Shown: positions 2,292 to 53,080 of the stretch, in pieces
How positions within the stretch are numbered: the stretch's first letter is position 1
Layout of the letters: the number at the start of each line of letters is the position of its first letter
Origin: Pelomyxa schiedti
Taxonomy: Eukaryota > Protista > Evosea
DNA: 64,000 nt
NCBI GenBank assembly: GCA_020536535.1
Contig: JAHLWZ010000802.1
Coordinates: 72,677-136,676 of the forward strand
Reading direction: 5' to 3'
Translations under genes and position numbers: made by a program
Notes under the pieces: generated by a model
The model's database searches: none
Seen by the model: only the letters and a program-made list of their open reading frames with translations
What the model was told of the DNA's origin: nothing

Positions 2292-4578
2292 TTACCTAAT
2301 TGCATTAGACAATTCCCAAGTTCCCAAGCGGGGTGTACCTCGGGCAACTTGATTTGCATAACCTTCAAAGTGCTTGTAGAATATTGAATCAATCGAGAGA
2401 GAAATATTTGTTTCATGCACTACAATTTTCCGAAGTTTGCCGCGGTTTGCAACCTAGTTTTCTATCAGTTAAGATAAGCAGAAATAAAACGGAGCAGACA
2501 TTTATGTCATGGTCGCTTTCTAAGCCTGTTACATCAGCAAAATGGATCAATGCGTGTTCTTGGCGCAATTTTTTTCTATCCTGAAATACTGTATGTTAAT
2601 AAAACACACAAATGCAGAAAAAGTCAAAAACCTTGTATAGTGCAGATAAGATACGGAGATTTGCGGTATATGCTGGTATGGATTGCAGCAAAACGTTTGC
2701 AAACGTTGATAACCCATGGCACCCTGCATCCAAGTAAGGCACCCCAAATCCTAGTCTGTACGCATAAAGCCTCCTGAACCAGTTTCCCGGGAAATGGAAA
2801 TGTACAGTACGGACAAATTCGTCAGAAAAATGAAGGGGTTCCGGCTCTCGAACATCTGAGAAATCCCTAAAAATGCACATGTCCTCCTTCTGAGATACCA
2901 CTTCCATTCCGGTTCTGATGATTGCAGTCGGAGAGAACCATGCAGGACGCACGGACTGCCGTTTTTTGGGTAGTTTTATGTCCTCTTCGCTTTCACTGCC
3001 TTCATCCCCATCATCCTCGTCATCGTCACTACCACTGTTGTCAGAGTAATAATCACTGTCATCTTCATCATTGTTATCTTCATCACTGTCATCTTCATCA
3101 CTGCCATCTTCATCGTCATCGTCTTCATCCTCATTTTTTTCGTTGTCATCCTTAACTTTGTCTTCATCATCATCTTTATAGTAATCTTCGTCATCCTCTC
3201 CCTCTACATCATTGTCTTCTTCCTCTTCGGCAGCATCTCCTTGGTCCTCATCTTCACCATTTCCCTCTGCATCTTCGTATGCCTCCTCATTTTTACTTTC
3301 CTCCTGGCGCACATCTTCCTCTTTCTTTTCTTTGTCCTCTTCCTGGCCTGCGGGTTTTCCAGTGGAATTTATGTCGACATTTCTTTCTTGTTCTGTGGTG
3401 TTGCATGGTACTATTGGAAATAGCTTGTATTCTGCTGGTTTAAAGAGAACCCGGGCGGGATCCCTGGAAGACACTTTGCATGCTGGGTGATTTTGTTCAC
3501 CAGGCTTGCTGAGTGGGGTACTGGAAAACAACTTACTTGGTTTCCACAAAGATTTTGGGATTTTCTTGACCTTCTCGCCTTGACAAATGGCATTGTCAAT
3601 TGCAACTAGTTTTTCCTGGCCTTGAATCACGGTAGTCTCTGCAAGACTTTTGCTTAAAACATTCAGTCCTTCTTGGGGAAGGTCGCCATCGCTGTTATTG
3701 ACATGGCTGCCCAAAGGAATTTCAGAGAGTGAAAAGCTGTTTTGTAGTTGAGCAGACACTCCAAGGCCGGAAGGCAAGAGAGGTGGCTGACATCGCATTT
3801 GATTGGGTTGTGGTTGCACAACAGTTCTGCACTTCTTTCTTGGAGATTGACTTATGGGTGAGAACGAAGACATCCATGAAGGGGAACCAGAAATGGCATC
3901 AACCCCACCGTCGACGTCCCCCACACTATCACCATCGATGCCACTGCTCCCAATCCTGCTACTACTACTACTACTAGTCGTAGTGGCAGTTGTAGTTGTA
4001 GCTACACCACACTGCTCTTCAGCCAGAGTAGTGGGCGACACCGATTCCTCGGTGAGGTCCACAACCACCACAGCAGGGTCCCTCTTCGTCCACGCCATTC
4101 GCCCGCACCCGCACCCATAGTTAGGCGCGCACTCGTGTGTGCCAAACGCCGGGGTAGCCGCCTTGGCCCCGCAGCAATCGCATTCCTGCCTCCTCCCCGC
4201 CGCCGCGGCCTGGCTGCCCGCGCGGCCCCCGCTCTGCTGCTGCCCCCGCAGTGGTGTGCTCTCCACCTTGGGGCAGGGCTTCGTGTAGGCCTGCAGAGGG
4301 GGGGCACCGGGGGGCGGGCACGTGGCCCAGCACCGCGGGGTGGTGTCCGTGTCGCCGTCGCCGGGAGCGGGAGCGGGAGTGGGGGCACTCGAAAAGCACG
4401 GGAGCAGGTGTATGGCCGCTCGGATGCGGACCAGCTGGCCTGTCTTTAGACCCATGCGGACCAGGTCGTCCTGGGTGAGCAGGGCCACAGTCGACATGCT
4501 GTCTACCAACTCGGCCTCAAACATGCCGATGCACCCTTGGCACCCTATGTCTGTCAGCCACTGCCGCACCTCATCCAT
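2292..4578 (-). CDS. SAM-domain protein with acidic low-complexity linker and uncharacterised conserved C-terminal domain (paralog A)
   Basis: The N-terminus MDEVRQWLTDIGCQGCIGMFEAELVDSMSTVALLTQDDLVRMGLKTGQLVRI is SAM-like, followed by a D/E tract. The C-terminus FPGNWF..YLDAGCHGLSTF..HDIN..DSIFYKHFEGYANQVARG emerges after removing two short introns and is homologous to 34468-36291. Confidence 0.8.
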
Positions 4579-4796
4579 GGTGTGGTTTTCGAACGCGACG
4601 AATATACGGCAGGAAAAGAAGGGTTTGGTTTCGGTTTTGGTTTTTATGTTGTTATTTATTTGTTTTTTGTCCAAATGAACACAATTGAAAGGGAGCCGCT
4701 TGGCTTGGCAAAAGCAAAGTGGCAAGCGTTTTTGCCACCGGCTGGTATTCACTGCTTGTGAGCATCAGGGGGTGGGGAATCGCCCTTCCAACAATT

Positions 4797-5450
4797 TTAC
4801 AAGCCGGAGTTGGCAACGTTCCCAGAGTAGTTGGCTCCACCGGCCTTGATCAATTGTGTGCGGACCTTGCTCTCCTCAAGGTCGTCAGTGGTTGTGCCGT
4901 GAACAGCCAAAGCGAAGTTCTGGATAACAACCAGTTAGGAGAAATGAACAAGCCTCACTGTGTAATCTACAAAATAAAGACAAGGGGGCATACCGCGAAA
5001 ACGCCCTGAAGAGCTGGCTTGTGAACGCTGACCTTGGCGCGCTTGATTGGGGAGACTCGCTCGCCTACCCATGAAATGAAGACGAACTTGGCGCGTTTGC
5101 TCTCAGCATCTCCGGTGATGCTATTTGTATTATTGTTTGTAAGTGTGAAGGATGCGTAGGGGTTAAACTTACAATCTGGCGAAGGCGTAGAGGCACTGGT
5201 CCTCCTTGAGCTCAGCGAGGAGCTCCTCGTATGGTCCCTCACTCTTCCTCACAACGACAATCTTGTTGCTGTTGGGTCCTGGATAGCCGCAAAGAACCCT
5301 AATGGAAACCATCAAACACAGAACAAAAAACCAAAACACATCGCCAACGGGGGGAAAAAAACGAGGCGAAACGAACCAGTTTGTGGGTGTGGCATCAGAG
5401 CGGACGTCTTTGTATGCCTCAACAAGTGCGGGATCTGATACGTCGGCCAT
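4797..5450 (-). CDS. Coactosin-like ADF-H actin-binding protein; multi-exon
   Basis: MADVSDPALVEAYKDVRSDATPTNW..LYAFARL..TGDAESKRAKFVFISWVGERVSPIKRAKVSVHK..LIKAGGANY matches coactosin closely. Confidence 0.92.
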
Positions 5451-5779: not shown

Positions 5780-7809
5780 TCAGTAGAAGTCCTGTGTTAT
5801 ACGTTTGTACAGTTGAATGTCTCTGGGCATGATAGTCATACGACCAGTGTGAACAGAGCAAGCTAATGAGCCAGCGTGCACTTTGGTAATATACTGTTCG
5901 GCTGCTTGCTGTAGGACCGTTGTTGCATCGTTGGAGAGTGTAATCAGGTCCGCGGGTTGTATGTCTGCGTCTCCGAGTGGAAGTGGCGGCAGAGATAATG
6001 CGTTGGCTGTTGTGGTTGTGGTAGCCGTTGTGCATGTGGGACTTGTAGTTGTAGTTGTAGCTGTAGCTGTAGGGGAAGTATTCCTTCGCCGTCTCTTCAC
6101 CTTGTCCTGTCATGTGGGGTAAGTTATTGAATCACTACTTGTGGGATTGTATGATGCTTACAGCTTGTGTAGTTTGGCAAATCTCCTCAGCGAGTCGTTT
6201 AAAGGCTGCATGTCCAAGTGTGAGACTGCAGGAAGGTTGAGGAACATTTGAATTCCACAGTAGCCGCTGAGTGTTGCGGACATCTTTCACAAAGAGTTTG
6301 ACCCTGTGGGAATGGATAGCTCCCAAGTTACTACTAGAAAACATGGACACAATATAGCTTTCAGCTACACAGAAGTTAAACTTTTACACATGGTGAAGTA
6401 ATAACCTGCAGAGTGTATTGCATCGGATGCTTCTTCAGAAAAAGTGAAGCCTCCTGTGGCAAACTCGCTGCAATTGGAGGCCACTTCCTTTAGAGCAAAA
6501 TTAAATAACTTCTTGTGCCAAGATAAACCTGAAGTAAGCCTCGAAATTCCGACTTCGGTATAACTGGGGTGCCTGTACTTTGTATTGCCTTAATTTCTGC
6601 AAGGCATTGCTCATCTGTCTCTTGCCCACATTCGTCATCACTTCTGGTTTCCTCCTTTTCCTTTTGACTGACATCAGATTCAGAATTGGTTTCAGGCTGG
6701 TGGCATTCAGTTTCATTTTCATCTTCTTCTGGGAAGAGCGTTGGGAGAATATGTGGCAGAACTCCAGCATTAGGAAATATGTAGCCTCTAAAAATGTACT
6801 GCATCTCCGCATCTTCTTCAATTGATAGCATTATATGTCGAGGAGTAATATCAGAACCTTATTTACGGTTTGTGCAGGAAGAGAAATAAATTAAACATAC
6901 TTGAAGAGGATTGTGCTTTTTGCAAACAAAGGTACAAAAACTCGGATGCAATGTATTCCAGTCCTCCTAGTAAAAACCATGGAGCTAATTTTAATGAGAT
7001 TTGAATTGCCACTGGCATTTGTCGCAACACCAGAGGCAGACCATGACGTCCCAGACTTCAAGTAAGTAACTAGGTGATGGGATGACAACAGAAATGCGAC
7101 TCTCGAAATGTTGGTTTCTAGGAAGGATGACTGCTTTCTAACGCAGTTTTGTCCCTCCACAACCGAATAGTCATACAGCTGGGTACCAGAGTAAACGATT
7201 GACATGGCAGTGTCTAACAGAGGTATATCCAGTTCTACGCGAGCGTGAATAGGTGAGTACAATGCCATTTAGGGTAGTACTACCAGAAGTTTTTGCAACC
7301 CCACGTGGAGGTACCTCTGTCAACTCTTTTTCTATGATAATACAACAAGTGTCACAAATTCGTCGCGCTACTTCACGTAAAATATCCACCATAACAAGCC
7401 CTGCCTGGGGGTTCAAGCTGTGACTCGAGGCCGTCTGTCCAACAAATGAGGGGGAAAAAAAAAGGGGGGGGGGGGGGGGGGGGGGGGAAGAAAAATAACG
7501 GAGCACATTGTGCAGTAGAAGAGAAAGCCCCTCAATTGGAAACCAAGATCTAAGGGCGGCCTCGAAGTTCGCTCTCTCATCCACAACACGCAACGAATCT
7601 AACGTAGTTACGACAGTGGGATCCCGGACTCGCGTCTCGCCGTCGGCTGTTAAAGACGAAGAAAAAGGGCACTCGTCGTAGTGCAGTTCTTGCCCGCATA
7701 GGCGGTCGTCTTCTTCCGTCGGCTCCGAGATCTCCCTCCAAACGCGCTCGTTGTGCCGCGTTATTTCGGCCTCTTCGTTTTTGGCGTTTTGCGTGCTTTG
7801 CCTGCTCAT
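5780..7809 (-). CDS. Fused multi-histone-fold protein (H2B-like, H2A-like, H3-like, H3-like); about 8 exons
   Basis: The spliced product contains H2B-like SLNPQAGLVMVDILREVARRI..LLDTAMSIVYSG..SVVEGQNCV and H2A-like APWFLLGGLEYIASEFL..ITPRHIMLSIEEDAEM..NAGVLPHILPTLFP. Then H3-like CLAEIKAIQ..IPKSEFRGLLQEVA..AESYIVSMFSSSNLGAIHSHRVKLFVKDV and a second H3-like AAFKRLAEEICQ..LQQAAEQYI..VHTGRMTIMPRDIQL. Confidence 0.85.
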
Positions 7810-7939: not shown

Positions 7940-10900
7940 ACGGATACGCTCAGCCACCGCAAGGCGTCGTTCGCGACACCGGCCTCGCCCTTCATTTTCC
8001 ACAGCCCCCTGCAGGAAGAGGAGGAGCCCTACCTCCTCGACGACCTGTACGACAACCGCTCCCCTCCCTACACGGCAAGCCCGCGGCGCCGGTCGGCCGG
8101 CTCGCCTAGGGACGCGGCCGCGCGCGGCGACGGCGCTTTCGCGTGTGACACCAACTTGGTCGGCGACGAAGACGAGCTTGGCTTTGGCGACGACCTCCCA
8201 CAATCCCAGCCTGTGCCGAGGCGCGTCAGCCCCGAACCTCAGCGGTCTCTGACCCAGCCTCATCCCAAGTCCCACTCAGAATCCAACCCATCGACACCGA
8301 CACCCACACAATCCCAATCCCAATCACAATCACAATCACAATCACAATCACAAACCCAAACTCAGCCATCCGAGCAAAGCCGGCCCACGTCCACCAAGCC
8401 TAAATCTTGCAAGAGCCTCCCACAATCACAATCCCAATCGCAGCCCCAGCCCCAGCCTCGGTCCCAATCTCAGCCTCAACCACAGCCTCAGCCTCAAACC
8501 CAGCCTCAGTCTCAGAACCAGCACGGTGAGGCGAGAAAGCGGCCCCTTAGGCAAAGTACCCTTACGGAGATGTTTGGCAGAGCAACTTCGCTGAACTTGC
8601 CTTCCCGGAATGCGTGTGATGACACAAGCAATTGCAAGAATGACTTGGGTGGAATCCTCACCTGCAGTTCTGATAGAACTTCTGCTCCAGGGGGCTGTCT
8701 CTTATCTTCTAACCAGGCCCCCGTCATACCCAGTGCGCCGGCTCGCGAGCGTGACAAGTCTGAGGCTGATGAGGCTGAGGCTGAGACTGAGGACGAGAAC
8801 GAGAACGATAACGATAACGAGGGGTTGGAGCCACCTTTACCAAAGAAATATCGGCCTGATTTGCAGAAGAAAACCCCAATGGTGCTCCGAGGTAGCCCAT
8901 TGCCAGTTTCACATAACTCCTCTGGAAAGCACAGATCCGCGAAGAGCACTAGAAATTATCTGTCCCAACCAGTGCGCTCGGTTGCTGCCTCTGAGGCGTG
9001 CTTGGAGGAAAACAGGGTCAAAGATTCTGATGAATCGAGATGTTGCTCTAAAAATTCTTCTTCTACCTTGTCCACTCCCCCAAAGCTCAGCTGCACGGTA
9101 TCTACAAGCACTTGTACATCAGTCACAGGCATTCCAACCCCAGTTCTCGGCGAGTCGCACCCACCGCAGTTACTTACTGGAAAAGGTTCAACATCAACAG
9201 ATACAACACACCTTACACCCGGGCCACTGCTCCCTTGTTCAACACCACCTGATGCTCTCTACAATTGCACAACACCAACTACTCCATTGCGTGCTCGCAA
9301 CAGTCAAGCTCGCATCCCAACTTTAAGTACTGCTGCCAGTCCCAAGAGACGTCGCAGCTGCAGCATGTCTCCCGGGTACATCGACCCTACTTCTGGGATT
9401 CACAGTATGGAAAAATTAGCAGATGCGGAGGCCAATCTTTCAAAATCCCATACTCCAGTTGAAGACTGGAGTACCAATTTCACTGTTAGGTCCGCGCCAT
9501 CTTCCCCAGTTTCTGGACATAGCCACACACATGAGAGGCCTCTGAAAACCATATATTCTTCATGTTGCAAGGACCTATTCTCAAGTAGCAAGCGCACAGA
9601 CGCTTGGGATGAAATGCATGTGAGATTACCTTGCTCTCCTAGGTAATTATTCTCCTGGGATAAAAAAAATATTCAAGATTCTTAGAAATATGGTTCGAAC
9701 AGATTGTTTGATGTGGCCCTTTATATGCACACTTTTGAGTCAGCCGATTGGGTGCTCTCACAGACTAGAGGTTTAAATACCTTACTTAGTAAAGCACTCA
9801 ACGAATTAGGAGATTATTTTCCTTCTCAATGTGCAATATAAAGCAATTTGGGATATGGGTGGCCTACACGAATACTGTATCAATGTTTATGAGCCCCATG
9901 CCTGTGCAGCACATAATTGCTTGTGCATCATGAAAGGTTTTTCCTTAGCAGTGGGGCAAATTGCATCTTTAGTCTGCAAGTTACCTGCTCTAGTAACTTC
10001 TCCCATTTCCTTACTGCGGTGTGAATCACCCTTACGTTCTCTTTGTCGCCTAATATCATTCAGGAAAACAATGAAGACCTCTGTTGTTCTGTCGCAACTT
10101 CAAATAGCAAGCTTGTTGGTTCTTCTTCCTTTCAAATCTGACGGTAAATTAATATTGCACAGGCCAATTGCTTCTTTTGTACATTTCCTCGGCGCAATGC
10201 TTTAACAAGCGTATTCACTTACTTTTTGTTAAAGTTGAACTCAAAATTTAGAAGGACACAATAAAAACGGAGTACTCTGACTTCCCTTCTGTGAATTTTT
10301 CGACACTTTATCAGAGGCATGCGCAACATAAACTGCGATTCATTTTTCATTATTTTGAACGAGTGCCCAACTTGCAACAATGTATTCACACTTTCCAATT
10401 GTCCGTAAAATGAAAATGCAGCAGGTGATGTCAAATTTACTCGCCACCATCTATCAACCCCCCCAGATTGGAGGCAGAGCAGTACCCCTTTAGGGAATTT
10501 AGTACCACATCTCAGTGGATCAGTTAATTCTTTGTTCCTTTTTTCTTTCCCTTACCTTCGAAGATGGAAGAGTCTGTAACGGATTTGCTACCTTGTGACA
10601 GCTTGTTGGTAGACTTCGCAAATAAAAAAATCGGCGGAGGTGTTCTTGGAAAAGTACTCCTGCTCTTCCTCCCTCCCACCACAAATAAACTTTGTTTGCA
10701 GGGATCTGCTCAAGAAGAGACTCTTTTTCTGACTCACCCAGGCTGGTAGAAATTCGTACTTTCCTGTATCCATAACCTGACTAGCCAGAACTCCTAGTCA
10801 GCCGTCTACTATGCGAAGAGCTAAATGATACAGAATGTGTGATAATTACTGGTGCCGAAAGGTTTTCTAGACACAGTGGATACTTGTCAGAACTTTCATG

Positions 10901-45417: not shown

Positions 45418-48400
45418 TCAGATAGAATCCAGGTCTTGCACACCGTCTCGTTCGAGCTCCGCTCTGATGGTGCTGCGCAAAAGTTCGAGGTCACAATTGT
45501 AGGACTTGGGCATACGGTCCAGGCACTTGACAGTGTGTGGGTGCATTTCGTGCAGAAGATCTTGCTTGTGGAAGAAGATGTACTGACGGACCAACATAGG
45601 AATTGGGGCTGGTTGGTTCCATGGTGGCACTTCCCAGGTGGGGAACGCTGTTGTGAAATCTCGGAAGGGTACGCGTTTGTCCGAACCACTGAGGCGGATC
45701 GTAGCATTTTTGGCGGCACTTTGCAGGCAAGAATCTGGATCAATCATGAGGGAGACACATTCGTGGGTTCCGCCAAGGCCGCCAGGTTGGTGTGCGGACA
45801 TGTGCAACCCGGAATGTCCGTCACCTGAGGGGTGGGCACACCGGATACGACACATAGGGCAAAGCTCCTTGCAACGCAACCGGAATGTTTCAGTGACTGG
45901 TGCATCCCGGAGGCGTTGAAGTATACCGTCAGCTATTCTACCTATGCAGAATGGTGTATGTGTTACAGAAGGGAGGGATTCATATGGAAGGGATTCTTCT
46001 ACGTGTGCTGCTATATCTTGCAGCTCCACCAAACCGCAACTGTCAATGTTGAACATGGCTGAGGCATTCTCAGGGTCTGGTAACCTGTCCTCAAGGAAGC
46101 CTAAACCCTGCAAGCTTGAGCGAAGCACGGTGAAGAACTTCTGGCTGCGGCCAGGGCACACACCTGAGTTGGTAGAAGGGTCGATATGTGCTGCCTGCTG
46201 GGCAGCTGTGTGAAGACTACTACATATCAGATTTCTGAGATTTACCAAGTCACTGTTGTCAGTGTAGTGCTTTTTAAGAAACACCATAATTCGTTGCGTC
46301 ATTACTTCATCATAGTGACTCTGGGGATCACTCAGAGCTTTCTTCAGGGCAATTGTCATTTATTTTTGTCAACAGGTCGTAGTCAGCAAGGTTCTGAAGC
46401 ACCTTGTACGACATTACAAAACCTTGTTGGCATAATTCTTGCTCACGTAGAAGGTTAGCAGTGCGGTGCACAATGAGGCTAAGGTGTTGCCTCCAGAAGG
46501 AATTGCGGATGGTTTCTACCAGATACTTCTTCAGACGCGCCTGCACTTCCAAGCCGTTGATTGTATCTAGGAAGAACTGCCGAAGTTCTACCTTCGACGA
46601 AGCAATCAACCCTGGAATGGAGTTGGTGCTATCCCACTTGCACTGCTTTGTGAGTAGTATTCTTGTCACCTCTTGCCTGGCCATGTTGTGGATGTAAGAT
46701 TTCACCGCAAAGCGGTACTCCCCCTTGCCGATAAGGAGGGCGTCTGTCTTCTGGATGACCATCTCGACTGCAGCATCAGAGTAAACAGTGTGGTCTTTTA
46801 GTAGACGCTTAACCTCTGCCATCACTTCAAAAAATAGACGTTGCACTCCCTCAATTTCTAACTCCGAACGCCTAGAATCCCCACTGAATATCTTTCTTAG
46901 GCGTGGAAGGAAAACGCACCAGGCTGAGCTGGCATGAGATGCCTTGGAACTCTCAATTTCTTCGGAGTACGTCGGCGTAATTACATCATCTTTAATTATG
47001 CCGCAGCGTTGCCTATACACTTGCCATACATTAGTCTCTACTAAGTTATGAAGTGGCTTGCACTCTGTCGAGGCTCTTTGCTCCACTCGATCAAATATTG
47101 CTGTAAATTCTTCCTCCTTTCTTGTATCAGACCAGTCCTTTCGCTCCTTCAAAGGATGTTGTTGGCACAAGACTTTGGTATCATAAACAATTTGTTGCTT
47201 GTACTCTTCCACCTTGATTTTGAAGAATTTGCGTGCCATAACTAGGTTACGGACTCGTTCAGAAGAAGCCACAGTTTGTTGGAAAAGGAAATTCTCCCAC
47301 TTGCCCTTCTCAGAATCCCTGAAGTTATTGTAAATACCAGGGGATATTGTGAGTTCAAACTGCTGGTTAGCTTTCTGTGCTTCCTCTTGAATCTGTTTTG
47401 CAATGTGCTGATCCAGCAGCCTAATTAGTTCCTGACATACTTTTTCTGGAAGATTCCCGCCTGCTTTCTCGGTTGCCTGTAGAAACATACCCCTGGTTCC
47501 TGGCTCGCCATCCACAAGTGCAACAAAGTTGCTCTGTACATTCTCAAAAGCTACCACATAGGCCTTTGACACACTGCAGCGCAGAATGCCAAGTTCATCT
47601 CCCAACTTTTCCAGAGCCACACGAGCATCTGCACACTGATACACCATCACAGACTCCATCTCGAGAATCTCATCCTGTGCTTTCAGGAAGTGCTCTGTCC
47701 AACGTGCCAATGAGCGGGATTTGAATTTGGCTTGCATACAGCACCGTTCGTGGATACGTTCACGCAAATTACTAACGTCAAGGCCATAATGGGAATCTGG
47801 CACGTCATCTGGGGCCCTGTCAGACTTGGTGATATTACCTAGGATGAAGATATCTTTTTCAGGAACGAAATCTGTAAGAAAGTCATTTGGGTTCTGCCCA
47901 GAGAGTGTGGAGGCAAGTTCCAATGCTTTACTCACATCATTGAAAAGAATGGCGCGCACTTCATCAACTACTTTCATACCTTGTGCCTTAGAAATACTCC
48001 GCATGGCAAAAAAGAGACGGTTTGTGAGGCGGCCAAGATTTCCTGTTGAGCGGTCGGAGATGTACTTGACAATTGATAGTACATCCCGAGAGTCGTTGGA
48101 TTGGTTTCCATTCACCAAAACAAGTGTTGCATCTGCCAACCACACAGCATACACCGCCAAGCGGTTGTCATGCAGAAGTGCATTATCTGTGTGATGCAAG
48201 TCAGGTGACCTAACTCCTTCCGTGTCCAGCACTAAGAGGTACTTGAATTTTGTGTCTTGTCTCTCACAACGGATCAGCTGCATATTCAAGCCTCTTGTGC
48301 ACCTTGTAACACTCGTGCGGAAGCGGCACCCAAACATCACGTTCAGCAAGCTCGACTTACCTGATTTTTGTACTCCCAGGATGCTCAAGACAAACACACG

Positions 48401-51400
48401 TGTAGGCTTCACACCCAGTTCCGGGTGCCGCTGGTGGATTGCCACCTGTAGAGCTGACATTACAGCCTTGAGCCAACTACCATTTGCCCAAGAGCAGTCA
48501 CCGTCGACCAACTCTATTGGAAACCCATCCAGTAAGTGCAATGCAGCCATCATTGGAAACTTGGCATAACGGTTAACCCCCTCATGGTTAGCAGGCTGAC
48601 ATATAACTGCCTTTTCTATTTGCACCTGTACCGCTTCATACATGCAGGCCATTTCTCGGAATAGGTGCTCTGGTGCGACCACAGACTCTGCCACAGCAAC
48701 TTCAGCCTTCTGACGTTCCTGTTCTGCCAGGTGGAGCTCACTGGCTGGAACTGATTTCGATACCTTTTCTTGGTACTGTTGGCGGGCTTTTGATCGCCTT
48801 GTCAAGAGACCGGCTCCTTTGCAATTGCAGTGTTCTTCAAGAAGGCGGTCCAACATTAGATACATATTCACACGGTCGGAAGCCGTTGTCCTCTGAAGGA
48901 TGGACTCAAACATACTCAAAACTGGCAGCTTGTCCAGCTGATTAACTATTTTGACCCGCTTAGAGAAGCAATCTTGAATATGACGGCTTGCTTCAGTGCG
49001 ATGAGCAATGGATGTCAAGGGGTTCTTATTTTGACGCATTGCGGCAACTTGATCCCTAAAGTGTTTATGTAATGGCAAGCTCTGGTCTCTAGAGATACTA
49101 AGAGTGTCAAGTATCTCCCGCATGTAAGCTATGCTATATGCTCCTGAAAGTGCCAGCGTTGATGAAGGTGACGGTACCGGTTTTGTGGTCGCTGTCGTGG
49201 TCATCGTTGCTGTTTTTGTTGTTGTTGTAGTTGGCGCTGCGGTTGTTGGTGTTGGTGGCACTTGAGTTGGGACAAATAAGAAAGAGAGGGGGTTACGGCA
49301 ACGCACAGGTTGCTTTTGAAGCATTTGAGTGCCCAAATTGTTGCGGTCTTTACAAGTGTCTCTCAAGAGTTGTTTAATGGTTGTTGTGAGTTCATCTGTG
49401 ACAAGTCCTTGTAGGTTATTTACCTTCACTCCTTTACAGTGAGTTTCTTTAGACTTCGAGAAGGGTGGCTTTGGAGTCCAAAATATGAATCGCGCTGGCC
49501 AGGGAGTAGTGCCCTGGGGAGTAAAGGATTTGTTGAGAGGTGGAGATGAACTCAGCTCAAAGAGTACTACATCAAAAAGTTCATGCAGTCTATTCTTCAT
49601 CTCCTCATACTTAGAATTGCCAACAATGTGAGATAGAATCAACGGTATTGGTGGCCGTTCCTCTGCTGAAGAGCTTTTCTGAGAAAGCCACCCATAGCCA
49701 AGCTCCGCTATGGAGCAGGTACCCACACCATATGCAGTTAATGTGTCACAACCGAGAACTTTAACAAGAGAGGGTGTTTGGCGGGAGCTTCCTTCCTCCA
49801 GGCTGACGAGGGCCACACGCATCAACTCTTGATCAGACACAATCACTGAAGTGTTACCCTCCAAAAGGAGTGTTTCAACATTATCAAGCGCATGCCCTGA
49901 TATTACTAGTGGCACGGCACAGCGTCGGTGCAACAATGTTGAAGCTATGTAACTTTGGGACACTTCATCACATTGTGATAGCATCTTGCACATCCTTTCA
50001 TGAGGTGATGTAAAAACTGTCGTGGATGGTGGTGTGAGGGGAGTATTACTCTCAGAGGCAAACAAATCATCCTCGCTCTGAGTTTCATCTGATTCAGCAT
50101 TGCACGTTACTTCTTCAGAAGAGCTTGGAGGTTCTGCTGACGTTGTAGGGAATGCCAGTCTATGAACAAGAACGTCAATTAACTCATGGTCCTCTAGATC
50201 TGGAAGAAGAGCCAGGGGTCTGTCGACAAGGAACTTCTCTGCAAAGGAAGACACCTCATGCTGACAAAACCATGTCACTGTAAGATTTTGTTCATTAGCA
50301 ACTTTTTTGCTACTACCAGATTCATTGGGAGGATATAAATTGTCATCACAATCGCCAAACCCAGCCAGATAGCACTTCATTTCATCAAGCATGTGCTCCA
50401 TCTGCATCTTTGATAAGGGTCCCTGAAAGCCACTTGCAAAAAAACCAAACTTATTCTGGAGAAGGTGTTTCAGCTCAATGGCCTGGCTTGTGGATGCAAA
50501 TCTACTATTTTCACAAAGGTTCCATACTAGAGTACGCTCGACTCGAAAAGCCACCATTGGGTGGTCCATGAGTTGGTCATAAAGTAGTTTATGGAGGATT
50601 TCAACAAGTTGGTTTCCACTTTCTACTGGCTGGGCAAACCAGTCACTTTCCGGAGAAGCATTTGCTTCGTGGTTGCGAGTCAGGAAAAGCTTTTCAATAA
50701 TGGGATTTCTAAACAATGGCGAGGTGGTATCATTCCGCTGGAGATCTACCTGTTGTGGCTCTGATATACAAGCGAATAGAGCACGCCTTAGCTCTGAAAA
50801 TCGATAAAGAGAAGGTACTGCAGTGCCGTCCTCTGACGGGGAACAAAGCTTCCCACAAATTTGCACTGCAGTGGCGAGTGGCTGGCCAGGTTCCAGGAAT
50901 TTGAAAAGGAGGTTAGATTCTCCAAGAAAAGAGGCCCACTTGTGTATCGCCATAAATGCCCGCAAAATTGCTTGTGCTGCCTGCTGGTCCCACTGTTTAT
51001 TGTCAATACCATTCTGAGCTTGTGCACTCACGATCACGTCTGCACATTGTTGTACAAACACCTGCAAAACAGCAAGGTCAGAAGCACACACGCCATTTCC
51101 AGAAGGCTCAGGTAGCTGGAAATGAGGGAGGCCATCTCCAAACAAGTCCTGTATACAAGTATCACGCTGCACCGCTGCCCGTGTCTGGTTTATGGCATCG
51201 AGAACTGTGGGAATATCACGCTGGTCTTCAGCCATCTGCAGCCAGGCTTGGCGTACAAATCGACCGGCGGCCTGCACAACATCTTCACTGTGGCGCAGCA
51301 TTAAGTCCCAGACAGGGATAAGGGTGTGAAACGGACCACGGTCAATGATGCGCCACGTGTTTGGGCTGCTAAGCAGCTGAGCCACGAAGGCATCAGCAGA

Positions 51401-53080
51401 AAAAACATTGGGGCCGTATGCTCTGACGTATGTGCGAATTGTGCAATCTCTCTGGCTTTCTGTCTCACGTCCTTGACCATCGAGATCTGGGAATGTGGAA
51501 GCACTCACAGCAATCTGAGACGTGAAACCATATGCTCCCCCTGCGCCGTCATCTATCTTCAAGCTCTGCATGGCTTTATTGCAGATAGCTTGGGCGCCTG
51601 TGCTCTCAGTAACGGTCACAGTAACATTACGGCTAAATGTACCTCCAATGGTGATGGTGCTTGAGGGTATATGAGAATAAAAATCGTTGAGGAAGTCGCG
51701 CCCCTGTCTGATGCCTTTTATAGTTCTAGCACGTGCAAGAGCCTCACTGTTCAGTACCATCTGTGTCTCTGGAATGCAGAACGTATTAACAGGTACACTG
51801 AGGGTCTCTGCAACAGATGCTGAAGTTCTTTTGGTTGCTTTTTCTTGTTGCCTCCACTGAGCACGGGATTCAGGGGTACTACCAGAATCTAAAGTGAGTT
51901 CCCAACCACTGGCCTTGAGTGATGTTGCTAGAGAGTATCCTATTGACTCCGCCACAGATTGAAATATAGTTGCACTTTGCTCGTTATTGAACTCTTCATG
52001 GGATACGGTAAATGGTACCTCCGGATTTCTCAAACGGCAGAATTCAGGCTTGCACAGCACAGGGTGTGGGGCACATTGGGTATTGCAATTGAGAGGCAGG
52101 CCAAACGGAATTGCGTTTAGAGCAGAGCCTGCACCAACTGTAGCAATGATATCTTCATCACTCCTCTCCTGTTGCCGGCTACTCAGAGCTGCTTGTATCT
52201 CTCTGTTCGTGCTTGCTAGTTCCGTTTTTGCTCGTTCCAGTGCCTGTATTGCTGTAGAGTGGTCTGTGATTCCAGAAGCCCACGTGGATTGCTGAGAAAT
52301 AAGGTCTGCCTCCGCCTGAATGGATGCTAGACTGCTTACAATATCTGAAGACACTGCTTGTATCTCTTTGCGTAACTGGTCATGTGTCTTGCTTCCTATC
52401 TTTGCCTCGTTCAGCAGCTGGTGGACCTTGGTTTCTGCATTCACAGTTGCTGCTCTTCTTGCCTCTACCTTGGCCTGTTCAATTCTCTGAGTCCCAGAGT
52501 ACTCTGAGGCATTCCTACGATATAATGCAGCGAGCCGCTTGAGGTCAACCAAACTCACACGGGGCTGTCCAGGTCCGCCGTGCAACAACTGGTCAATATG
52601 CTCCTGCTTAAGTTCACTCGGAGAACTCACTCTTGCACACTGGCTGCGCTCAAGGAAGTCCACCACCTGCAAGTTAATTTCCTCGCTCACAAGTGCCTCT
52701 CTCAAGGACCTACCTTGTGCCCACGTTGTAATCACCGCCTGACGAGCCACGGCATCGTCCCCGTCGTCGCCAGTGGGATGAGTTGCCAAAAACGTGTCCA
52801 ATTCAGCATAACTGCGGGCCTGCAAGTCTTCCCTGGTCGGGGACTCTCGGGCTATAGTGACCAGCCACCCGGGTAAGCTCTTGTGGTCTTTGATACAGAC
52901 CATGCCGCAGAGGTGTCCCAGAGTCTCTAGTCTCTGCCTCAGGTGGGTAATGTCCAGATCTGTGGCTGAAAGTGCCGACTGCACCCCGACGGTGTCATGC
53001 ACCAGCGCGTAGGCGAGGGCCACAACACTGTTGTTGTACTTGTCGTGAGTTGGGCAGTGGAATGCCCCGGGCACGCTCAT
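45418..53080 (-). CDS. Very large inducible GTPase (VLIG/GVIN1-like) with N-terminal MACPF-like region; intronless, split by one frameshift at about 46328-46359
   Basis: G1 VLSILGVQKSGKSSLLNVMFG, RCTRGLNMQL, G3 LDTEGVRS, HDNRLA. The C-terminal Cys/His cluster CKELCPMC..C..H..H..HQPGGLGG lies in the second ORF. MACPF-like FLNDFYSH..TIGGTF and WRIIDRG upstream. Confidence 0.85.

Follow-up and report, generated by a model that had tools for sequence, protein, structure and literature searches.

The 64,000-nucleotide stretch of Pelomyxa schiedti DNA analysed here (contig JAHLWZ010000802.1, positions 72,677 to 136,676; hereafter the window) contains, on its minus strand at positions 5780-7809, a histone-fusion gene named Pelo_10767. 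Its eight exons, separated by seven introns, encode a 560-amino-acid product in which four histone folds follow each other in the order H2B-H2A-H3-H3. The gene is found as a single copy in the P. schiedti genome, where canonical H3, H2A, H2B and H4 genes as well as H2A.Z-like genes are retained. This four-fold histone fusion is a real, conserved and apparently undescribed eukaryotic architecture, with a putative function deduced from the features discussed below.

Gene structure and orthologues of Pelo_10767

Exons 1 to 4 cover positions 7809-7507, 7434-7284, 7234-7031 and 6984-6901, and exons 5 to 8 positions 6857-6529, 6487-6406, 6364-6162 and 6106-5780, all on the minus strand. The introns are short (72, 49, 46, 43, 41, 41 and 55 nt) and the seven of them have GT-AG ends. 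Once joined, the exons form a frame of 560 codons followed by a stop, with no internal stop codon. Intron 1 is itself stop-free and in frame; homology favours its removal. A search with exon 5 against 1.84 billion representatives retrieved a 560-amino-acid protein, identical across exon 5 (residues 249-357), which is Pelo_10767 of P. schiedti (KAH3757441.1). Since KAH3757441.1 matches the spliced frame, the depositors' model agrees with the preliminary description of this DNA, where seven short introns were proposed to unite open reading frame fragments into one four-fold protein. Full-length analyses used this database protein, and homology searches of the window DNA were performed exon by exon.

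Transcript evidence comes from a 284-nt RNA-seq contig (depth 3.1) aligned on the minus strand at positions 5827-6106. Its start coincides exactly with the exon-8 acceptor (6106), leaving four letters unaligned, and no contig spanning a junction was recovered. The contig is weak evidence, consistent with a rare spliced Pelo_10767 transcript. For the other six junctions, the basis is given by the GT-AG ends, the continuity of the frame and the orthologues. In the single RNA run, the adjoining cofilin-like gene is spliced and has a depth of 46, which places the RNA depth of Pelo_10767 at about 1/15 of that of its neighbour, a rough value drawn from contigs. Three further runs confirm the Pelo_10767 sequence. 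Because contigs cross introns in at least two of them, these three runs most likely represent genomic DNA.

Three relatives came from the same exon-5 search. In Mastigamoeba balamuthi, m51a1_g10209 encodes a 543-amino-acid orthologue within a gene range of 1742 nt that includes about 110 nt of intron in total. A metagenome contig from JGI (L019) carries all four folds in a single intron-free frame with one TAG interruption, read here as X. In a 257-kb contig from ENA (L020), six of the seven Pelomyxa intron positions are matched by GT donors in the same phase (one of them shifted by a codon, in a loop); judging from the sequence, six intron positions therefore appear to be common to L020 and Pelomyxa. 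Where measured, identity of the relatives to the Pelomyxa protein is 31-34%, and the fold order is the same in the four lineages, all anaerobic amoebae, of which those of L019 and L020 are uncultured. These four sequences constitute the family considered below; some residue and charge tallies concern three full members, as stated in each case. The relationship of Pelomyxa to Mastigamoeba and Entamoeba is a distant one (PMC8887013). As Pelomyxa and Mastigamoeba both have the gene in spite of this distance, the fusion probably dates back to the Archamoebae ancestor. A scan of metagenomes returned other histones and histone repeats but no additional family member. Word-index homologue searches overlooked known orthologues, and their blanks say nothing on the range of the family.

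Considering these data, it is extremely improbable that separate or decayed histone genes have been mis-spliced into one model. Animal fusions of such a kind were indeed judged to be mis-annotations by Talbert et al. 2022 (PMC9145170), and no junction-spanning RNA contig was recovered here. Such an artefact is nevertheless largely refuted by the intron-free frame holding the four folds in L019, by the short intron total of the Mastigamoeba gene, and by the fold boundaries of Pelo_10767 itself, which lie within exons 3, 5 and 7 with neither stop nor start between folds.

Among other multi-histone proteins, five that fall outside the Archamoebae family are intron-free and have long acidic inserts (L027:3764-6418, L029:3-2387, L092:378-2294, P0067 and P0039). 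Fold orders in this group include H2B-H2A...H3, H2A-H4...H3 and H4-H2B-H2A-H3-H4-H3.

Fold identities and residue pattern

Per-fold profile searches agree with the order H2B-H2A-H3-H3 put forward in the preliminary description, and the histone-like motifs quoted there were all found in place. Against chains of the Protein Data Bank (PDB), the family profiles reach E values of 2.5e-10 for H2B, 1e-22 for H2A, and 1.7e-15 and 6e-13 for the two H3. The fourth fold gives 51-60 bits on the H3 profile versus 3.5-9 bits on the H4 profile, and none of the four folds is an H4. The top PDB matches of both H3 profiles are canonical H3 and not CENP-A. When the exons are taken one by one, Pfam assigns exon 5 to the H2A C-terminus and recognises the histone fold in exon 7 as well as in exon 8.

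All features of the product are encoded on the minus strand. The roles of individual residues are those of the established nucleosome structure. The H2B-like fold (residues 93-186; positions 7131-7533) has an insertion in loop L2. It retains E113; its loop contacts are gone, and E76, R92 and E93, which bundle with H4, are not conserved in the family. The H2A-like fold with its docking domain (residues 187-290; positions 6730-7130) retains E56, E61, D90 and E92, while R32, R35, R42 and R77 have mostly disappeared: the first two are gone in all three full members and the last two in two of three. The four H2A residues and H2B E113 form an acidic patch that is retained in the three full members. 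An acidic linker follows (residues 291-325; positions 6625-6729; net charge -12), which is acidic in 4/4 members. The first H3-like fold, or H3a (residues 326-423; positions 6249-6624), has the alphaN helix and matches H3 profiles. In Pelo_10767 it retains E50, Q55, Y99, H113, R116 and D123; R49, R63, R69 and R83 are gone and T118 is replaced by K. The second H3-like fold, or H3b (residues 431-560; positions 5780-6227), is devoid of alphaN, carries a long low-complexity L1 insertion, has A127 replaced by Y and ends with an aromatic C-terminus. The L1 insertion opens with a basic cluster found in 4/4 members (positions 6083-6106), which resembles a nuclear localisation signal (NLS) and may be a monopartite one. 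In the family, the H2A docking motif GV-P-I, the contacting H3a alphaN residues E50, I51 and Q55 and the hydrophobic cores are retained, as are H113, R116 and D123 in both H3 folds.

Upstream of the H2B-like fold, a family-specific N-terminal segment (about residues 37-92; positions 7534-7701) contains two conserved short motifs and a helix running into H2B, and can be aligned in the four members. As a decayed H4 or another histone fold it was discarded, hhalign giving a probability below 1% versus H4, H3, H2A and H2B.

AlphaFold models the H2B-H2A half with pLDDT values mostly between 70 and 90. With Foldseek, this model superposes on engineered single-chain H2B-H2A dimers with TM-scores of 0.7-0.84 depending on the target; the SOS histone domain is matched as well, with an identity half as high. 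Thus, as modelled, the H2B and H2A folds would form an intramolecular dimer.

The protein might instead serve as a scaffolding subunit with histone folds in a complex acting in transcription or at the kinetochore, of the TAF, SPT3, CENP-T/W, SOS or ABTB type. Such proteins lose DNA contacts too, weak Pfam matches to CBFD_NFYB_HMF and CENP-T_C were observed, and the SOS histone domain is matched in structure. However, core-histone matches are far stronger: in exon 8, the core histone E value is 6.6e-10 versus 5.8e-4 and 0.014 for matches of the former types, and the best profile matches of the family are core histone models or chains rather than TAF, SPT3, CENP-T/W or NF-Y. Identity to SOS is 11-12% versus 20-24% to H2A and H2B. 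In Pfam searches, the Pelo_10767 protein and P0003 match histone families only, without DH-PH-RasGEF or ankyrin-BTB domains. Finally, the docking domain, alphaN and the acidic patch are nucleosome-specific features. This assignment to a non-core family is therefore quite improbable.

The Pelo_10767 product has a pI of 4.94, with 48 K+R versus 77 D+E. Net charges of the three full members are -29, -51 and -48 versus +21 to +45 for four viral-type repeats, and each fold of the fusion protein is neutral to acidic. The sequence and charge data agree with the lack of basic tails and the acidic linkers pointed out previously. In addition, H3 R49, R63 and R83 are gone in every family fold spanning them, and R69 and R72 are gone in H3a; R63 is also gone in viral repeats and is not discriminating alone. 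The preliminary description had envisaged either a non-canonical nucleosome or a histone mimic or chaperone. A net charge of -29 to -51 and the disappearance of DNA-contact arginines speak against a DNA-wrapping nucleosome, and the mimic or chaperone branch is consistent with the residue data.

A true histone variant might yet be imagined, in which an H4-free octamer formed by dimerisation would wrap DNA loosely at special loci or stages, such as cysts or centromere-like chromatin. The four folds are complete, the docking domain and alphaN are retained, H113 and D123 are invariant, R116 and K122 are retained together with R69 and T118 in H3b, and viral quadruplets self-assemble into nucleosomes (PMC11222145). 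The strongly negative net charge, the neutral-to-acidic folds, the missing minor-groove arginines, the eroded H2B-H4 bundle residues and the low RNA depth relative to the adjoining gene, however rough this contig-based ratio is, nevertheless make this mechanism distinctly unlikely.

Phylogeny and origin of the fusion

Trees were built for the H2B+H2A part (56 rows) and for the H3 folds; L020 was left out of the trees, and the H3 tree contained no cenH3. IMG/VR rows carry a documented viral label, whereas that of the remaining quadruplets is inferred. In the H2B+H2A tree, the family forms a clade (98/95) whose position is not settled; its nearest neighbours by path are separately encoded eukaryotic histones and unplaced doublets. 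Forcing the family with the viral quadruplets costs 7.8 log units, with p = 0.177 in the approximately unbiased (AU) test. Forcing it with a eukaryote-like cluster gives the best-likelihood tree, 3.7 better than the free tree (p = 0.727), but this cluster was defined after seeing the tree and its test is therefore lenient. The H3 tree places H3a and H3b as sister groups (93/89, not starred), the pattern that an internal duplication would produce. The AU test rejects neither a grouping with the viral quadruplets (p = 0.22; 0.221) nor one with single H3 (p = 0.26). In summary, the family is a clade distinct from the viral repeats in the free trees, and its placement is not decided by the AU tests.

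The favoured origin, as far as these comparisons go, would be a host fusion of H2B, H2A and H3 genes followed by an internal H3 duplication. Whatever the mechanism of action, a giant-virus histone repeat, for instance an H2B-H2A-H3 triplet, could alternatively have been captured in the Archamoebae ancestor, with subsequent H3 duplication and intron gain. The H2B-H2A-H3 order is common in Nucleocytoviricota, one family member (L019) is intron-free, and, as seen above, groupings with viral quadruplets are not rejected. The nearest Atlas clusters by features and shape are also viral repeats, but this likeness follows from the common multi-fold layout and the comparison covered only clusters of at least 50. 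Against a capture, no relative of the fusion family was found in the viral contigs scanned, and the tested neighbours of Pelo_10767 (cofilin/ADF, SAM, PARG-like and RING) are ordinary eukaryotic genes. The H3 folds match single eukaryotic H3 at least as well as viral quadruplets or Marseillevirus doublets. Host doublets, such as SOS and an H2B-H2A.Z doublet of P. schiedti, adopt the H2B-H2A order too. We thus consider viral capture unlikely. The domesticated viral gene suggested in the preliminary description is neither supported nor rejected: the family forms its own clade, nearest by path to separately encoded eukaryotic histones and unplaced doublets, and the AU tests tolerate a grouping with viral quadruplets.

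The H2B-H2A.Z-like doublet (G000:C5) is intron-containing, has an acidic linker and occurs as two inverted copies (L006:785-1950 and L007); it is a second histone fusion in P. schiedti. By its sequence, it is built from crown-eukaryote parts and indicates that the same genome made another fusion. In metagenome contigs of about 1 kb (L024, L025, L031 and L054), H2B-H2A doublets flanked by acidic stretches form a well-supported clade that groups with eukaryote-type histones.

Proposed role and comparison with known histone repeats

Taking as established how the gene is built, which folds it encodes, its orthologues and the residue patterns, we propose, with a probability of roughly one half, that host histones have been fused into a nucleosome-surface mimic or scaffold free of DNA. 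Host H2B, H2A and H3 genes would have been fused and the H3 fold duplicated, yielding a single-copy gene kept across Archamoebae. H3a and H3b would pair in a handshake with H3b in the H4 slot, a role towards which H3b would have converged. The pair would dock on the H2A docking domain via H3a alphaN and the H4-like aromatic tail of H3b, thereby giving a one-chain half-octamer. Because the protein is acidic and most DNA-contact arginines are gone, it would not wrap DNA. After nuclear import through the basic motif, the intact acidic patch would be displayed, so that the protein may act as a low-abundance decoy or scaffold for acidic-patch-binding chromatin factors, alongside normal chromatin.

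The location of the second H3 in the H4 slot, already suggested in the preliminary description, is plausible in view of the lack of alphaN in H3b, its aromatic end and its linker. An F or Y in the register of H4 Y98/F100 terminates H3b in 4/4 members versus 6/34 other terminal H3 folds, and the spacing between H3a and H3b is 27, 27, 34 and 65 amino acids versus 34 in a viral H3-H4 fusion. Structure prediction supports one part of the pairing scheme, since the H2B-H2A half pairs in the model; for the H3-H3 handshake, no confident pairing is obtained.

Several points weigh against the proposed mimic or scaffold. The model of the H3-H3 half has a pLDDT of 53 and a pTM of 0.34, it matches single H3 chains only and no double folds, and confidence is low both within the whole protein and when this half is modelled alone. 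The trees leave the origin unresolved and are limited by long branches. RNA support for the gene consists of one low-depth contig at one junction, the exon-8 acceptor. Neither H3 fold varies at H113 or D123, and H3b retains R69, R116 and T118, so that the protein could assemble into higher-order structures or make some contact with DNA. Lastly, partner binding, localisation and the presence of the protein itself are predicted only.

The low confidence of the H3-H3 model is also compatible with another mechanism, in which the H3 folds would remain unpaired with each other. Each would bind a separate H4, either canonical or divergent, and they would meet via an H3-H3′ four-helix bundle, resulting in a hexamer-like core or in an H4 sink or chaperone. 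H113, D123 and most H4-facing hydrophobic residues are retained in both H3 folds, a divergent H4 gene of this genome has introns and encodes F in place of H75, and viral H2B-H2A-H3 triplets take H4 in trans (10.1101/2024.12.06.627149). Conversely, the bundle residues L126, A127, I130 and R131 vary in H3a and A127 is replaced by Y in H3b; moreover, Y99 is missing from H3b in most members and F104 in every one of them, and an aromatic tail resembling that of H4 has been acquired there. Recruitment of H4 in trans is thus rather unlikely. The divergent H4 (G000:C994, L097:1050-1665), a candidate trans partner of the H3 folds, has a Ser/Thr-rich N-terminal stretch.

A bolder version of the handshake may be considered, in which the H3 duplicate would have taken over the H4 role and an H4-free one-chain half-nucleosome, possibly of viral descent, would dimerise into an octamer-like particle in chromatin. 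We regard it as doubtful. If true, viral quadruplets would have a verified counterpart in cells for the first time.

Viral histone repeats comprise doublets, triplets and quadruplets, the quadruplets having one of each core histone (accessible parts of PMC11222145, PMC9145170 and 10.1101/2024.12.06.627149). Orders described in the accessible parts of the first two sources for Nucleocytoviricota are H2B-H2A-H3, H2B-H2A-H3-H4, H2B-H2A-H4-H3 and H4-H3-H2B-H2A; H2B-H2A-H3-H3 is not among the viral repeats reported there. The phrase H3-H3 is absent from PMC9145170 and from 10.1101/2024.12.06.627149, and a literature search, with limited coverage of subscription papers, found no account of the fusion gene or of its fold order in a cell or a virus. 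Like Nucleocytoviricota repeats, the fusion protein has several core folds per chain, H2B ahead of H2A and no tails. In contrast, its gene is cellular and intron-bearing, it has two H3 and no H4, it is acidic and its DNA contacts are gone. It therefore differs from viral quadruplets, which are virus-encoded basic DNA-contact proteins with one of each histone.

Among eukaryotic double-fold proteins are the SOS H domain, ABTB2/Cca3S and SPT3 (PMC13088155, accessible in part). They share with the fusion an intramolecular H2B-H2A pseudodimer, modelled in the present case, and a low identity to histones; in both cases, the pseudodimers are probably used for protein rather than DNA contacts. The amoebozoan fusion differs from them by its four folds, docking domain, acidic patch and H3 alphaN, and by the absence of signalling, ankyrin or BTB domains. 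Animal histone multiplets, as far as the accessible part of PMC13520046 goes, are likewise eukaryotic records with at least three histone folds per chain. Doublets tabulated there are at least 88% identical to canonical histones, and the records are scattered across taxa, whereas the fusion family stands at a large distance from canonical histones, has orthologues in separate lineages and includes an intron-free member. Neither H2B-H2A-H3-H3 nor the amoebozoan family is described in the accessible parts of PMC13088155 and PMC13520046.

Like macroH2A and cenH3, the members of the fusion family are divergent paralogues existing beside canonical histones. cenH3s have longer L1 loops and no Q68, two properties shared by the H3 folds of the fusion. 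However, these variants are single folds that enter nucleosomes, and the best PDB matches of the fusion are canonical H3.

According to a 2022 review, eukaryotic histones included no confirmed fused doublet, triplet or quadruplet (PMC9145170). Viral repeats serve as evidence on the origin of the nucleosome (PMC11222145). The existence of a conserved four-fold fusion in cells, and of further doublets in the same genome, suggests that such repeats can be assembled from a eukaryote's own histones. This bears on the question whether viral repeats must be pre-eukaryotic relics. The family also makes it possible to test, in a natural case, whether an H3-derived fold can replace H4 as the partner of H3, and its product is a candidate nucleosome mimic encoded by the host. 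The question is testable, as Mastigamoeba balamuthi grows axenically.

Other histone genes of distinctive composition were noticed. An H2B variant (G000:C1109, L012:1132-2015) is extended at its N-terminus by a long segment that looks SHOCT-like by eye, and its C-terminal tail is strongly acidic. An H3-like exon (G000:C817, L015:1727-2134), divergent and encoding a long basic tail, might belong to a cenH3.

Around Pelo_10767, the downstream minus-strand neighbours are a spliced cofilin/ADF-family gene (about 4900-5450), the introns of which are confirmed by RNA, and a gene (2596-4752) whose product has a SAM domain and a long acidic tract. On the plus strand, a divergently transcribed neighbour (8156 to about 10800) has a low-complexity N-terminal exon, and a downstream open reading frame at 10564-10749 weakly matches a PARG catalytic domain. 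Further away in the window, at 46328-53080 on the minus strand, an unbroken open reading frame of 2250 amino acids, in this intron-rich genome, contains a URGCP-like (very large inducible-type) GTPase domain.
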